From sequence record NC_041917.1: a stretch of DNA of 64,000 bases. One strand, written 5' to 3'. Shown here piece after piece: positions 32,366-48,691 of this stretch. Both the position numbers and the translations under genes were made by a program. Within the stretch, counting starts at the first letter, position 1. Each line of letters begins with the position of its first letter. The notes beneath the pieces are model-generated. The model was not told the DNA's origin and searched no databases. It saw only the letters and a list, made by a program, of their open reading frames with translations.

Positions 32366-32768
32366 AAACTTTAGTACATTAAGAAAAACAGTTAATCGTG
32401 GAGATTATTGTTATTTTAAACTTAATGATTATTATGAGATTAAATGTGGTGATGATTATTTGGTTCAATTTAAGTATAAACCAAATAGTCAAGATTATTA
32501 TTATATGAATTATGATTATAATAATGATTCTGTTATGTTTTATACAACTAGAAAGTATTCTGGTTATTGGAAACATTCAGCACCTGATAATATCATAATA
32601 TTTAAGAACTTAACAAGGTTATGTACAGAGGAAGGACATTTTCAGGAAATGACCAGACAGGACTTGACAGATTTTGAAATTCCTGATATAATTTCCTTAT
32701 TGATGATGGGAAAAGCCATCGTTGACAAAACTAAGGAATATAGAAATGTCGGAACGTCCAGTACTTAA
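32322..32768 (+). CDS. hypothetical protein, EExxFQ paralog family
   Basis: CTEEGHFQEMT motif. Confidence 0.7.
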   Translation: MTWKKINEVVGRFYKNFSTLRKTVNRGDYCYFKLNDYYEIKCGDDYLVQFKYKPNSQDYYYMNYDYNNDSVMFYTTRKYSGYWKHSAPDNIIIFKNLTRLCTEEGHFQEMTRQDLTDFEIPDIISLLMMGKAIVDKTKEYRNVGTSST

Positions 32769-33177
32769 TTATAAATGTTACATTCTTCTTCGTGAAGATC
32801 TTGACATGCCGCAAGGTAAATTTGCTGTACAGGTAGGGCATGGTTTAGATCAAGTATGGCCTCTATATATGGACTACAAAGAACGTAGTCGTAAAGAGGA
32901 TAATGAAGATTTAATCATGCCTGTTTCTAACTTTGAAGGTTGGTATAAAGAAGGTCGTCGCAAGATAGTACTACGCCTTAAAAGCGAAGACCATATGAAC
33001 AAGATTAAAGAAAAAATTCAGGCTGAAATTGATTCTAATGAATATCATCCTGGATATTTTGTTCATGATATTTTTGATTATGGTTTTAACTTCTTTGATG
33101 GGTTAACACAAACTGGCCTTATCATTTATCCGAACCAAACAGAAATTGCAGCAGTAAAAAGACTACGATTGTGGTAA
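32746..33177 (+). CDS. peptidyl-tRNA hydrolase 2 (PTH2)-like protein
   Basis: YILLREDLDMPQGKFAVQVGHG, RKIVLR, D.G..T motifs. Confidence 0.8.
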   Translation: MSERPVLNYKCYILLREDLDMPQGKFAVQVGHGLDQVWPLYMDYKERSRKEDNEDLIMPVSNFEGWYKEGRRKIVLRLKSEDHMNKIKEKIQAEIDSNEYHPGYFVHDIFDYGFNFFDGLTQTGLIIYPNQTEIAAVKRLRLW

Positions 33178-37199: not shown

Positions 37200-37210
37200 C
37201 AGAATACTGA

Positions 37211-37460
37211 CCGTTGTTGGGATGTTGGCTTAGAGGCAGCAATCATATAATGAGTGTCGAGAACGATCCGTAATTGGTAAACGTACCACAATGACCAATC
37301 GTATAAGTTCAGGGGAAGAAAAGACCGGATACAGTTATGTTAGTACGGTATGCACGGGCGGCGTATACTTAATACAGGAAAGGTAGGTGGTACTACTTTG
37401 TACTGATAAATGCTAACATAGACCCTTAGAGACTTTGGCGTAATAGCACACCATCAACGG
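37211..37460 (+). ncRNA. ncRNA containing a split mimic of the 23S rRNA L11-binding (H43-H44) domain
   Basis: GGATGTTGGCTTAGAGGCAGCAATCATATAATGAGT ...182 nt... GCGTAATAGCACAC, closed by CCGTTG/CAACGG. Confidence 0.75.
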
Positions 37461-37492
37461 CTTTTTAATTAAAATAATATATGGTATAACCT

Positions 37493-37825
37493 ATGACTAT
37501 TAAAGTTAACGGTACTGTAACTGAAGTAAAATCAGTTGAAGTTGATATTAGCATAGTTGAACTCGAAAAAGCGGCAAATCAGTTGACAAACGGACAACTT
37601 CTTATTATATTAAAACGGAAGTTGGTTCAACAATTAATTTCAAAAGATCCTGCACTACAAGGTGCAGAACTTTCATGGCATGGTACATGTTGGGAAGTTT
37701 TTGATTACTATGATTATCATCATCGTGAAGATAAGTACAAAAAACTTCGTGATTTAAATGATGAAGAAAAGTACGCACTATCCACATTCAACGATGTATT
37801 TGAACTATTCAGGAAATTACAATGA
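37493..37825 (+). CDS. hypothetical protein
   Basis: ORF track. Confidence 0.75.
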   Translation: MTIKVNGTVTEVKSVEVDISIVELEKAANQLTNGQLLIILKRKLVQQLISKDPALQGAELSWHGTCWEVFDYYDYHHREDKYKKLRDLNDEEKYALSTFNDVFELFRKLQ

Positions 37826-38079
37826 CAGTACAAAAATTTGAAAAGTTACCTATCCAGATTGATGCCCTTGAATGGACTGGTAATAATCTTAAAGAGTTAA
37901 AAGCCTTTGCGAGTCCAAAAGAAGTAAAGATTAATAATATGGGTCATTGCAAAATTGAAACTTTAGAAGGCTGGTTAACTGCATCGATTGGTGATATGAT
38001 CATCAAAGGTGTACAAGGGGAAATTTACCCATGCAAACCTGATGTGTTTGCACTAACGTATCGTAAAATTGAGGAATAA
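37822..38079 (+). CDS. widespread conserved phage protein of unknown function
   Basis: IETLEG..GD.IIKGV.GE.YPCKPD.F..TY motif. Confidence 0.85.
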   Translation: MTVQKFEKLPIQIDALEWTGNNLKELKAFASPKEVKINNMGHCKIETLEGWLTASIGDMIIKGVQGEIYPCKPDVFALTYRKIEE

Positions 38080-38082
38080 AAA

Positions 38083-38421
38083 ATGACGCACTAGAATGAT
38101 AAAACTTGGATCTATGTATTTGTTCGTACTGATTTACCAATCGAACAAGTTGTAGTACAATCAAACCACGCCGCTTATGAAAGCGGATTAGCATTCGAAA
38201 ATAACAGTACTGAGACTAGTTCTCTAATCGTTATCTCGTGTAAGAATAAACATAAGTTACAAAAAGCATATGATGAACTCCAAGCTGAGGGTATTGATTT
38301 AATTCAATTCCATGAACCAGATTGGGATTATGGTTTAACTGCATTTGCCAGTGCTCCAGTAACCGCTGAACAGCGTAGTATCTTCCGTAAGTTTCAACTT
38401 TTTCGTGGAGGTGCTAAATGA
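38083..38421 (+). CDS. PTH2-like protein with in-frame TAG at codon 4 (readthrough candidate; missed by ORF track)
   Basis: SD GAGG + ATG-ACG-CAC-TAG, then 108 open codons with YVFVRTDLP..Q..VQ..HAA and FHEPD..LTA motifs. Confidence 0.75.
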
Positions 38422-38984
38422 TTTATCCTAACACTTTCGAAGAATTGCTACAAGTAATGCAAAAAACTGAGCAAATGAAAGGTCTTAGTGTTCATGCACA
38501 TGGACTTATGGTTGTTGAACAGTATAAAGTACTAATTTCAGAACTTGACACTGGATAGGGCGACCCTATATTACTTGAGGTATATGGTAAAATTAAAGAT
38601 AAGATTTTATCAGATGATATTGTATTACGTTACCAAGAGTTTCATGATTGTGGTAAACCAATATGTCGTGTAGTTGATGATGAGGGTAAAGTTCATTTCC
38701 CTGAACATGCTAATATCAGTGCAGATGTTTGGAGTAAGCTATTTCCAAATGAAAATGTCATTCAAGAGTTGATGCGAAAAGATATGACTTTCCATGTTGC
38801 AAAATCTGATGATTTTGATACAATATGGCAAGATCCTTTAGCACCTACTTTGTATGTAACTGCATGGGCTGAGATTTTAGCGAACTGTACAATGTTTGGT
38901 GGTCAGGATAGCACTTCTTTTAAAATTAAAAAGAAGAAGCTAATTCAAGCAGGTAAAAAGTACTTAAACTCTTTACCTAAATAA
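38418..38984 (+). CDS. HD-domain phosphohydrolase with in-frame TAG at codon 47 (readthrough candidate)
   Basis: SD GGAGG, ATGA coupling; one TAG at 38556-58, then HDCGKP..F.EHA motif in the same frame. Confidence 0.75.
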
Positions 38985-39026
38985 TTTTAAGGCGGCTACG
39001 GTCGCCTGTTTTAAGAGGTTTCCATT

Positions 39027-39488
39027 ATGGAAAGTAAAAATACTGAAAATGTAATGACTGTTGAAATTTTCAAAGGAGCCACGCAAGAAACTATTTTTGT
39101 GTGTCGTTCACAAGGACAGTACTTTGCACCTGACCAAACGTATGATATTCATGAACATGAATACATCAAACGCTACGATACACATTTTTATCATAAAATT
39201 GATGAAAAGAATTGTCGAGAAAGTCATCGTGAAATCATGTTTGGTAAAGATGGAAAACCTGGATATATCTTTAGTTTAGCTAAAGGTTTATCAAAATCAT
39301 ATAATTTAGGTGAACTTGACAGTATTGTATTCACTTTTAGTGGATATGGTGACTGTACGGGTGAAACCTTTATTGTTAGTACTCTAGACTATGCAGAAAA
39401 GGAAGAATTTCAGCAAATTGTCGATGACAAGGAATTACTCTTTAGTAAGTTTAAAGAAGCATTCCCTGAACATGAATTAAATTTATAA
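39027..39488 (+). CDS. hypothetical protein
   Basis: SD GAGG. Confidence 0.8.
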   Translation: MESKNTENVMTVEIFKGATQETIFVCRSQGQYFAPDQTYDIHEHEYIKRYDTHFYHKIDEKNCRESHREIMFGKDGKPGYIFSLAKGLSKSYNLGELDSIVFTFSGYGDCTGETFIVSTLDYAEKEEFQQIVDDKELLFSKFKEAFPEHELNL

Positions 39489-39497
39489 GGATGTATT

Positions 39498-39689
39498 ATG
39501 ATTACTACTGAAAATGTAACGCTATACGATACCCTAAATGAATCATATGGTTCTCCGTATGGCTTAGGATATAAGGGATATATCTTTGTGTTCGAAACTG
39601 TTGCTGAACGTGATTCTTGGATAAATGAATGCACCGACGAAGACTTAGATTATATCATTGAAAATGAAAGTGTAGAAACCGAGGATTAA
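39498..39689 (+). CDS. hypothetical protein
   Basis: SD AAGGA. Confidence 0.7.
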   Translation: MITTENVTLYDTLNESYGSPYGLGYKGYIFVFETVAERDSWINECTDEDLDYIIENESVETED

Positions 39690-39693
39690 AACT

Positions 39694-40044
39694 ATGGGTT
39701 CGAATGTAGAAGCTTCAATTAATGTAAAACTTGTAAAACAACCACGTGGTATGAAAGGTGCTAAACCTGATATTGAACAAATTCATACTGATTTGTGTTC
39801 TATTGTTGAAAATGAAACGTTTTCTATTCATAGTAATACTAATATTGTGGCTGAACCAGAATGTCGTTGGAGTGAAATAGATTCTGATATGAAAAAATTA
39901 TCAGTACTATATCCTGGAATTTTATTCACGGTTAAAGTTGTTATTCCAGACTATGAAGTAAATGAACTACATTACTTCTATGAAGGTAAAACTCACGAAG
40001 CTGTGATCACATTCTCACCATTCGATGAAGCACTTTTGAAATAA
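39694..40044 (+). CDS. hypothetical protein
   Basis: SD GAGG. Confidence 0.8.
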   Translation: MGSNVEASINVKLVKQPRGMKGAKPDIEQIHTDLCSIVENETFSIHSNTNIVAEPECRWSEIDSDMKKLSVLYPGILFTVKVVIPDYEVNELHYFYEGKTHEAVITFSPFDEALLK

Positions 40045-41665: not shown

Positions 41666-41741
41666 GCCTTTGTAGCTCAGTTGGTAGAGCGGGAATCTCT
41701 AAAATTCTTTGTCGTCGGTTCGAGTCCGACCATCGGCACCA
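41666..41741 (+). tRNA. amber suppressor tRNA (anticodon CTA)
   Basis: stem GGAAT/ATTCT, loop CT-CTA-AA, canonical D and T arms, encoded CCA; two acceptor-stem mismatches. Confidence 0.85.
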
Positions 41742-48566: not shown

Positions 48567-48691
48567 GGCGAGTTAGCTCAGTTGGTAGAGCACGTAGAAA
48601 CCCAAGATTCAAGTACTTGAATCTTACAGCAACAATAACTCATACACTTTTAATGTCGTGGTCGTTGGTTCGAATCCAACACTCGCCGCCA
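48567..48691 (+). tRNA. interrupted tRNA-Lys(TTT), 49-nt insert 48595..48643
   Basis: removing the insert gives CGACA-CTTTTAA-TGTCG; insert = AAGATTCAAGTACTTGAATCTT + ACAGCAA; encoded CCA. Confidence 0.8.

Follow-up and report, generated by a model that had tools for sequence, protein, structure and literature searches.

A UAG stop codon is kept at codon 3–4 of a peptidyl-tRNA-hydrolase-like gene, and also in its partner gene, next to a phage amber-suppressor tRNA in the jumbo Serratia phage BF and in dozens of unrelated large phages, which points to the long-missing client genes of suppressor tRNAs in standard-code phages. The gate was analysed in a 64,000-nucleotide stretch of record NC_041917.1 (referred to here as the window), of which positions 37400–39700 are 100% identical to Serratia phage BF (KY630187, Eneladusvirus, 357,154 bp), a Rak2-like phage; window coordinates equal record coordinates minus 248,000. 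All of the following features lie on the + strand of the window. A Shine-Dalgarno (SD) sequence, GAGGA (38071–38075), is located 7 nt before the ATG at 38083 and overlaps the TAA (38077–38079) of the upstream gene. The leader reads ATG ACG CAC TAG (38083–38094, with the TAG at 38092–38094 followed by A), and 108 sense codons follow (38095–38418), ending with TGA at 38419–38421. No ATG, GTG or TTG occurs in frame anywhere in the 108 codons. The ATG of the next gene (38418–38420) overlaps the TGA as ATGA.

The first-pass annotation had described the SD, the amber codon at position 4, the 108 uninterrupted codons with PTH2-like motifs and no alternative start before them, the coupling to the next gene, and a second, uninterrupted PTH2-like gene at 32746, and each of these observations was confirmed. 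The second gene (32746–33177), just upstream of tRNA-Leu(tag), is a canonical Pfam PTH2 member (E 5.8e-12, 46 bits against a cut-off of 23). What had been missed is that the next gene (38418–38984) is also interrupted. Its N-terminal 46 codons, containing the first His of a predicted HD site (HAHG), end at an in-frame TAG at codon 47 (38556–38558), and 141 further codons (38559–38984) carry the FHDCGKP, FPEHA and DMTFH motifs of an HD phosphohydrolase, with the first in-frame start 70 codons in. A promoter-like match over this TAG (38545–38572) was not conserved in relatives and was treated as a chance match.

To check whether the TAG codons reflect sequencing errors, strain-specific nonsense mutations or decay, seven Rak2-like lineages were compared: BF and the pEa_SNUABM phages, Yersinia fHe-Yen9-04 and fHe-Yen9-03, Pectobacterium CBB, Cronobacter GAP32, Erwinia Kaldavass and Xanthomonas XbC2. 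All of them read ATG-NNN-CAM-TAG, although the second codon (ACG, TCT, GCA, GCT), the codon after the TAG (AAT, ATT) and the whole upstream context varied, and all kept GGA TAG GGC GAT in the partner gene. Pairwise Nei–Gojobori dN/dS was 0.06–0.17 for the ORF behind the first TAG, 0.05–0.16 for the N-terminal piece of the partner and 0.08–0.18 for its C-terminal piece, with dS up to about 1.0, indicating strong purifying selection. A sense codon in homologs had been named beforehand as the outcome that would refute the first-pass reading; instead, the TAG was conserved from 100% down to about 30% protein identity. The annotators of BF left 286080–286417 of the record (window 38080–38417) empty between BF_0404 and BF_0405, the region is also unannotated in Yen9-04, and other annotators called truncated ORFs from internal TTG or GTG codons. 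The PHROGs database accordingly holds the fragments as separate families, while phrog_14850 matches both pieces of the partner colinearly. Since the same TAG recurs in independently sequenced isolates and in metagenomic contigs (about 40 phage contigs beyond the seven lineages), with the SD and ATG conserved and a high-confidence AlphaFold model for the product, the error or pseudogene explanation is refuted, and the two genes are read as genuine, selected protein-coding genes.

A tblastn search with the post-TAG piece found homologs with 47–57% identity in three unrelated large phages, all with TAG at codon 3: Salmonella phage Arash (GAGGAATCATC ATG CTG TAG AAC), Acinetobacter phage ME3 (ATG ACT TAG ATT) and Ralstonia phage RsoM2USA (AAAGGAG...ATG TTG TAG ATT). 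A profile-seeded scan of IMG/VR returned 77 loci, of which 62 remained after the removal of identical proteins (loci, or contigs, are denoted below by L and a number). In 38 of the 62, an in-frame TAG was present 9–19 codons before the conserved VR-D strand, with no ATG in between. One sense codon separated ATG and TAG in 21 of these, two in 9 and three to seven in 5, whereas no ATG was found in 3. An SD-like motif preceded the ATG in 32 of 35. On a maximum-likelihood tree, the gated state was strongly clustered (8 changes, against 19 for shuffled labels; 0 of 500 shuffles as low) and spanned deep branches. Among 185,579 species genomes, only 8 loci were found, all of them MAG contigs, one of which again reads ATG ACC CAC TAG, so the family is phage-restricted. 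It is also large, with 1,991 cluster representatives at E <= 1e-10; about 20 of the best 150 start at profile position 11–19, as truncated gene calls would.

A tRNA with anticodon CTA was called by both ARAGORN and Rfam (60 bits) at 41666–41741, about 3.3 kb downstream of the gated gene, and its ortholog sits in the same position in all Rak2-like relatives. It is a class I tRNA with A73 and an encoded CCA. The suppressor of BF, Yen and CBB has two conserved acceptor-stem mismatches (U4–C69 and U5–U68; window 41666–41741, L014 9981–10053), whereas GAP32, Kaldavass and XbC2 have perfect stems; it may be deliberately weak, and with these mismatches its suppressor activity is only inferred. In ME3, a tRNA(CTA) lies 450 bp upstream of the gene, in RsoM2USA 13 kb downstream, and in Arash about 1 kb downstream (L008 2810–2884), where ARAGORN assigns the CTA anticodon to a tRNA labelled by the depositors as tRNA-Phe, making it an unrecognised amber suppressor. 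In the non-redundant set, a tRNA(CTA) was present within 6 kb in 32 of 38 gated loci against 8 of 24 ungated ones (Fisher p = 8.5e-5), and in several loci it was the only tRNA. Six gated homologs showed none within 6 kb. The ungated homologs that do have one have it 115–890 nt upstream of the gene; at that position, one relative carries tRNA(TCA) instead and another locus carries tRNA(TTA). The link between the protein family and suppressor tRNAs is therefore wider than the gate, which is an extra layer on top of it.

The suppressors are diverse class I tRNAs with different acceptor stems and with A, G, U or C as the discriminator, and single standard-code phage contigs can carry two or three different ones; such sets, and the tRNA(TTA) or tRNA(TCA) at the equivalent position in relatives, were noted in L035, L039, L041, L043, L045, L048, L054, L056 and L060, and at L047 4761–4836 and L062 5798–5873. 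Attempts to infer the inserted amino acid gave no assignment: the E. coli tRNA nearest to the BF suppressor was tRNA-Thr at only 74–76%, no close paralog was present among the phage's own tRNAs, and the residue aligned with the partner's TAG was Val in two intact homologs, which is uninformative. The tyrosyl-tRNA synthetase of BF (BF_0125) was considered as the charging enzyme, but BF also has an ordinary tRNA-Tyr, so nothing follows from its presence. An initiator-like suppressor using TAG as the start codon was rejected, because the anticodon stem lacks the three G–C pairs and the SD is spaced for the ATG. In L037 (2458–2862), L065 (5962–6501), L078 (5992–6477) and L087 (5989–6483), the PTH2-like ORF has no stop codon before the adjacent tRNA gene (tRNA-CTA in L037 and L065, tRNA-Arg tct in L078 and L087) and reads into it, so that excision of the tRNA would leave a non-stop mRNA.

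The presence of several tRNA(CTA) genes in related contigs could suggest that TAG is reassigned genome-wide and is an ordinary sense codon in these phages. Counting TAG inside long TAA/TGA-delimited ORFs did not discriminate between the alternatives. However, treating TAG as sense in the 77 loci raised coding coverage no more than the TGA control did. The whole BF genome was then read and every in-frame TAG scored using codon usage on both sides. The only early-type candidate was the PTH2-like gene and the only credible internal-type candidate was its partner, while two other hits were antisense to annotated genes. TAG ended just 6 of 287 ORFs of 150 or more codons. Global recoding is thus very unlikely and is rejected for BF.

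The product of the gated gene scored below the Pfam PF01981 gathering threshold (17.2 bits against 23, E 0.006), in contrast to the paralog at 32746 and to the fusion protein ORF364 of Xanthomonas phage XacN1 (25.3 bits). Its predicted fold was nevertheless that of Pth2: with a 55-sequence alignment, AlphaFold gave a model with pLDDT 93.4, and its 12 best PDB matches were all Pth2 structures, among them 3erj, 2zv3, 1q7s, 1wn2, 1rlk and 1xty (probability 1.0, TM 0.66–0.80). The profile also hit Pth2 chains (E 1e-3), and the VR-D and Q..HA motifs and, less clearly, the Asp-containing motif are shared with archaeal and eukaryotic Pth2. R11, Q22 and H25 were invariant. The catalytic Lys (GKGK loop) and Asp (DAG motif) are reportedly essential in Sulfolobus Pth2; in the HMM alignment to 2zv3 and 24bt, the Lys loop was two residues shorter and had no Lys, and an Asp (D76 of EPD, over 90% conserved) lay near the DAG motif, offset by a few columns. 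The protein is therefore a divergent member of the Pth2 superfamily, in which hydrolase activity is only inferred.

The partner has 174 uncharacterised homologs, and the H27, H79–D80, H100 and D125 metal ligands of the H...HD...H...D motif were invariant in 45 sequences; together with the all-helical HD fold of the model, this fits an HD-domain phosphohydrolase. The Pfam HD match was below threshold (16 bits against 22). The profile and the AlphaFold model of an intact homolog (pLDDT 96.8) best matched the HD region of class II tRNA nucleotidyltransferases (3wfo–3wfs), followed by other HD proteins, although these matches were modest (E 4e-3, TMq 0.6). In the E. coli CCA-adding enzyme, this domain acts as a 2',3'-cyclic phosphodiesterase and phosphatase; the partner, however, is a stand-alone protein of about 187 aa without a nucleotidyltransferase head. 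In BF, the first His lies before the TAG and the HD dyad after it, so an active site would require readthrough. The two genes overlap or adjoin in the Rak2-like, Arash-like and ME3 phages, and lie within 0.2–1.3 kb in RsoM2USA (where the partner is RsoM2USA_91 and not RsoM2USA_92, which was initially considered) and four further contigs. In L020, L038, L055, L060 and RsoM2USA, the partner itself starts M-x-TAG or M-x-x-TAG behind strong SDs, and the N-terminal helix aligns across the TAG with intact homologs, so the same gate has been placed on both members of the pair. In XacN1 ORF364 (L089 2452–3312), the HD-like and PTH2-like domains are fused, with the latter at the C-terminus of a protein with a normal annotated start. 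An SD-less ATG AAA TAG lies 7 codons upstream of this start, so the fusion may also be amber-gated, but this is ambiguous and XacN1 was not counted as a gated example.

Taken together, the data favour, with fair confidence, programmed amber suppression by the phage's own tRNA. In this view, ribosomes start at the SD-ATG and after two codons meet UAG, where either RF1 releases a tripeptide or the phage tRNA(CUA) inserts an amino acid and the full protein is made. As the gate sits in an unstructured N-terminal tail, or in a loop in the partner, any residue should be tolerated, which fits the diversity of the suppressors, and output would depend only on how well the suppressor competes with RF1. 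The suppressor tRNA and the two enzymes would form one cassette, and since both enzymes have predicted folds that work on the 3' (CCA or aminoacyl) end of tRNA, their dose would be tied to the amount of mature, charged suppressor tRNA in the infected cell. The anatomy, conservation, selection, folds (as models), genomic linkage and absence of other TAG clients in BF were established by this analysis, whereas the occurrence of readthrough and its use of the phage tRNA, the action of the enzymes on tRNA ends, including peptidyl-tRNA hydrolysis, and the sign and purpose of the coupling are inferred from comparative evidence alone. Feed-forward clean-up of peptidyl-tRNA and damaged ends produced when stops are read through, negative feedback on the suppressor itself, and simple temporal licensing are all possible purposes. 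The first-pass interpretation was thus supported only in part: dependence on UAG readthrough by the phage suppressor is well supported by comparison, whereas the proposed feedback switch on a release-related enzyme remains a hypothesis, and the family-wide nature of the gate and its extension to the coupled partner had not been recognised.

Two other explanations of expression appear unlikely. The ATG-x-x-TAG could be a tiny upstream ORF, with the PTH2-like ORF translated by termination–reinitiation or by direct initiation at a non-canonical codon just after the TAG (ATT, ATC, GTT, CTG) and no suppressor involved. In about 22 of 38 gated homologs the codon after the TAG is ATT, ATC, GTT, GTA, GTC or CTG, which leaves some room for such initiation, and BF encodes a homolog of IF-3 (BF_0316), the factor that polices non-canonical starts. 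However, about 15 of the 38, BF among them, have AAT, AAC, ACC, GAT, GGC, AAG or CTA, none of which is a known start codon, and this reading explains neither the partner's TAG at codon 47 nor the enrichment of tRNA(CTA) next to gated genes. Alternatively, readthrough could be independent of the phage tRNA and sense RF1 activity through host near-cognate tRNAs, for example when RF1 is limiting, as the first-pass annotation had also proposed, or antagonised during infection. The base after the TAG is A in 21, G in 15, C in 2 and T in none of the 38 gated homologs; a following purine favours readthrough at UAG, and a following U gives the strongest termination. On the other hand, host near-cognate readthrough at UAG is normally very low, and the tight linkage with tRNA(CTA), even where it is the only tRNA in the locus, would be unexplained.

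The RF1-sensing explanation gains some support from a conserved structured non-coding element of about 265 nt at 37205–37470 (+), whose 5' part is a near copy of 23S rRNA helices 43/44, the L11-binding GTPase-associated centre (Rfam LSU positions 1095–1146, E 0.05; 36 nt at 88.9% identity to E. coli 23S genes). An H44-like piece follows about 190 nt further on, together with a closing stem showing compensatory changes, and the element has no Rfam family. In CBB, GAP32, Kaldavass and XbC2 it ends 30–40 nt before the gated gene; copies were located at L003 2210–2480, L005 3885–4160, L020 ~10048 and L027 ~10625, and the motif is also present in ME3. A pattern scan of IMG/VR found 98 viral loci, 96 of which are not real rRNA. 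Most lie in tRNA-rich regions of large phages and only about 10–15 show the cassette within the short locus, so the element is more widespread than the amber cassette and only may belong to it. Limiting L11 is reported to raise UAG suppression (PMC11826901), as is out-competing it, and a role as a ribosomal-protein decoy is conceivable. A more speculative and rather improbable, though not excluded, model is a self-contained amber switch carried by many large standard-code phages, in which one or more suppressor tRNAs are combined with the two UAG-gated enzymes acting on the suppressor or on by-products of suppression, closing a feedback loop that sets the level of UAG readthrough in the infected cell, and, in several lineages, with a decoy RNA weakening RF1 termination.

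Phage-encoded suppressor tRNAs that decode in-frame TAG in standard-code hosts are already known from TAG-reassigned crAss-like, Lak and other gut phages, where recoding is proposed to act as a post-transcriptional gate on a subset of genes (Borges et al., preprint 10.1101/2021.08.26.457843). In those phages, tens to hundreds of late, structural and lysis genes carry many TAGs, whereas here the code is standard and only one or two genes, both for predicted tRNA-end enzymes, carry a single, positionally conserved TAG, usually at codon 3–4. The main text of that preprint does not use the word hydrolase. In prfB (RF2) autoregulation, a gene of the termination and tRNA-recycling sphere is likewise gated by an early in-frame stop (UGA at codon 26), so that its output reports decoding activity at that stop; however, prfB escapes by +1 frameshifting and its own product reads the stop, whereas here escape would be by a suppressor tRNA, the product has a predicted Pth2 fold and is not a release factor, and any feedback loop is hypothetical. 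Suppressor tRNAs are annotated in many standard-code phages, and the authors of the genome papers on XacN1 (PMC5852040) and Summit (PMC9022506), large standard-code phages with the same kind of tRNA(CUA), state that they could not find the targets. Those studies read through annotated stop codons only, which could not reveal a TAG 2–3 codons after an unannotated start. Literature searches returned no description of the gate reported here.

The finding supplies concrete, conserved candidate client genes for these tRNAs and explains why they were missed, as gene callers either skip or truncate a gene whose TAG sits 2–3 codons after the start. It defines a large phage protein family that travels with suppressor tRNAs, offers a minimal, testable example of virus-encoded control of gene expression through the genetic code, and may represent an evolutionary stepping stone towards full stop-codon reassignment. 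In practice, annotation pipelines should look for SD-ATG-N(1–4 codons)-TAG starts near tRNA(CTA), and the leader and tRNA pairs are natural amber-suppression parts.

The small gene just upstream of the gated gene ends with a similar C-terminal motif in BF (BF_0404, 37822–38079; IYPCKPDVFALTYRKIEE) and in Arash (gp85c, L008 1328–1594; RYPCKPEIFDKTYEPA), so the conserved block may be three genes long. Outside the window, BF encodes a large tRNA and translation toolkit (BF_0072, BF_0076, BF_0125, BF_0146, BF_0178, BF_0188 and BF_0316), comprising an Rnl1-like ligase, Pnkp, the tyrosyl-tRNA synthetase, a Thg1-like guanylyltransferase, a second RNA ligase, a full CCA-adding enzyme with an HD domain and the IF-3 homolog. 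Within the window, Rfam called two tRNAs (+) that ARAGORN missed, one of 122 nt (48567–48688) with an insertion of about 49 nt after the anticodon-stem region, resembling an intron-containing or split tRNA, and the other a weak 73-nt match (54006–54078, 36 bits).
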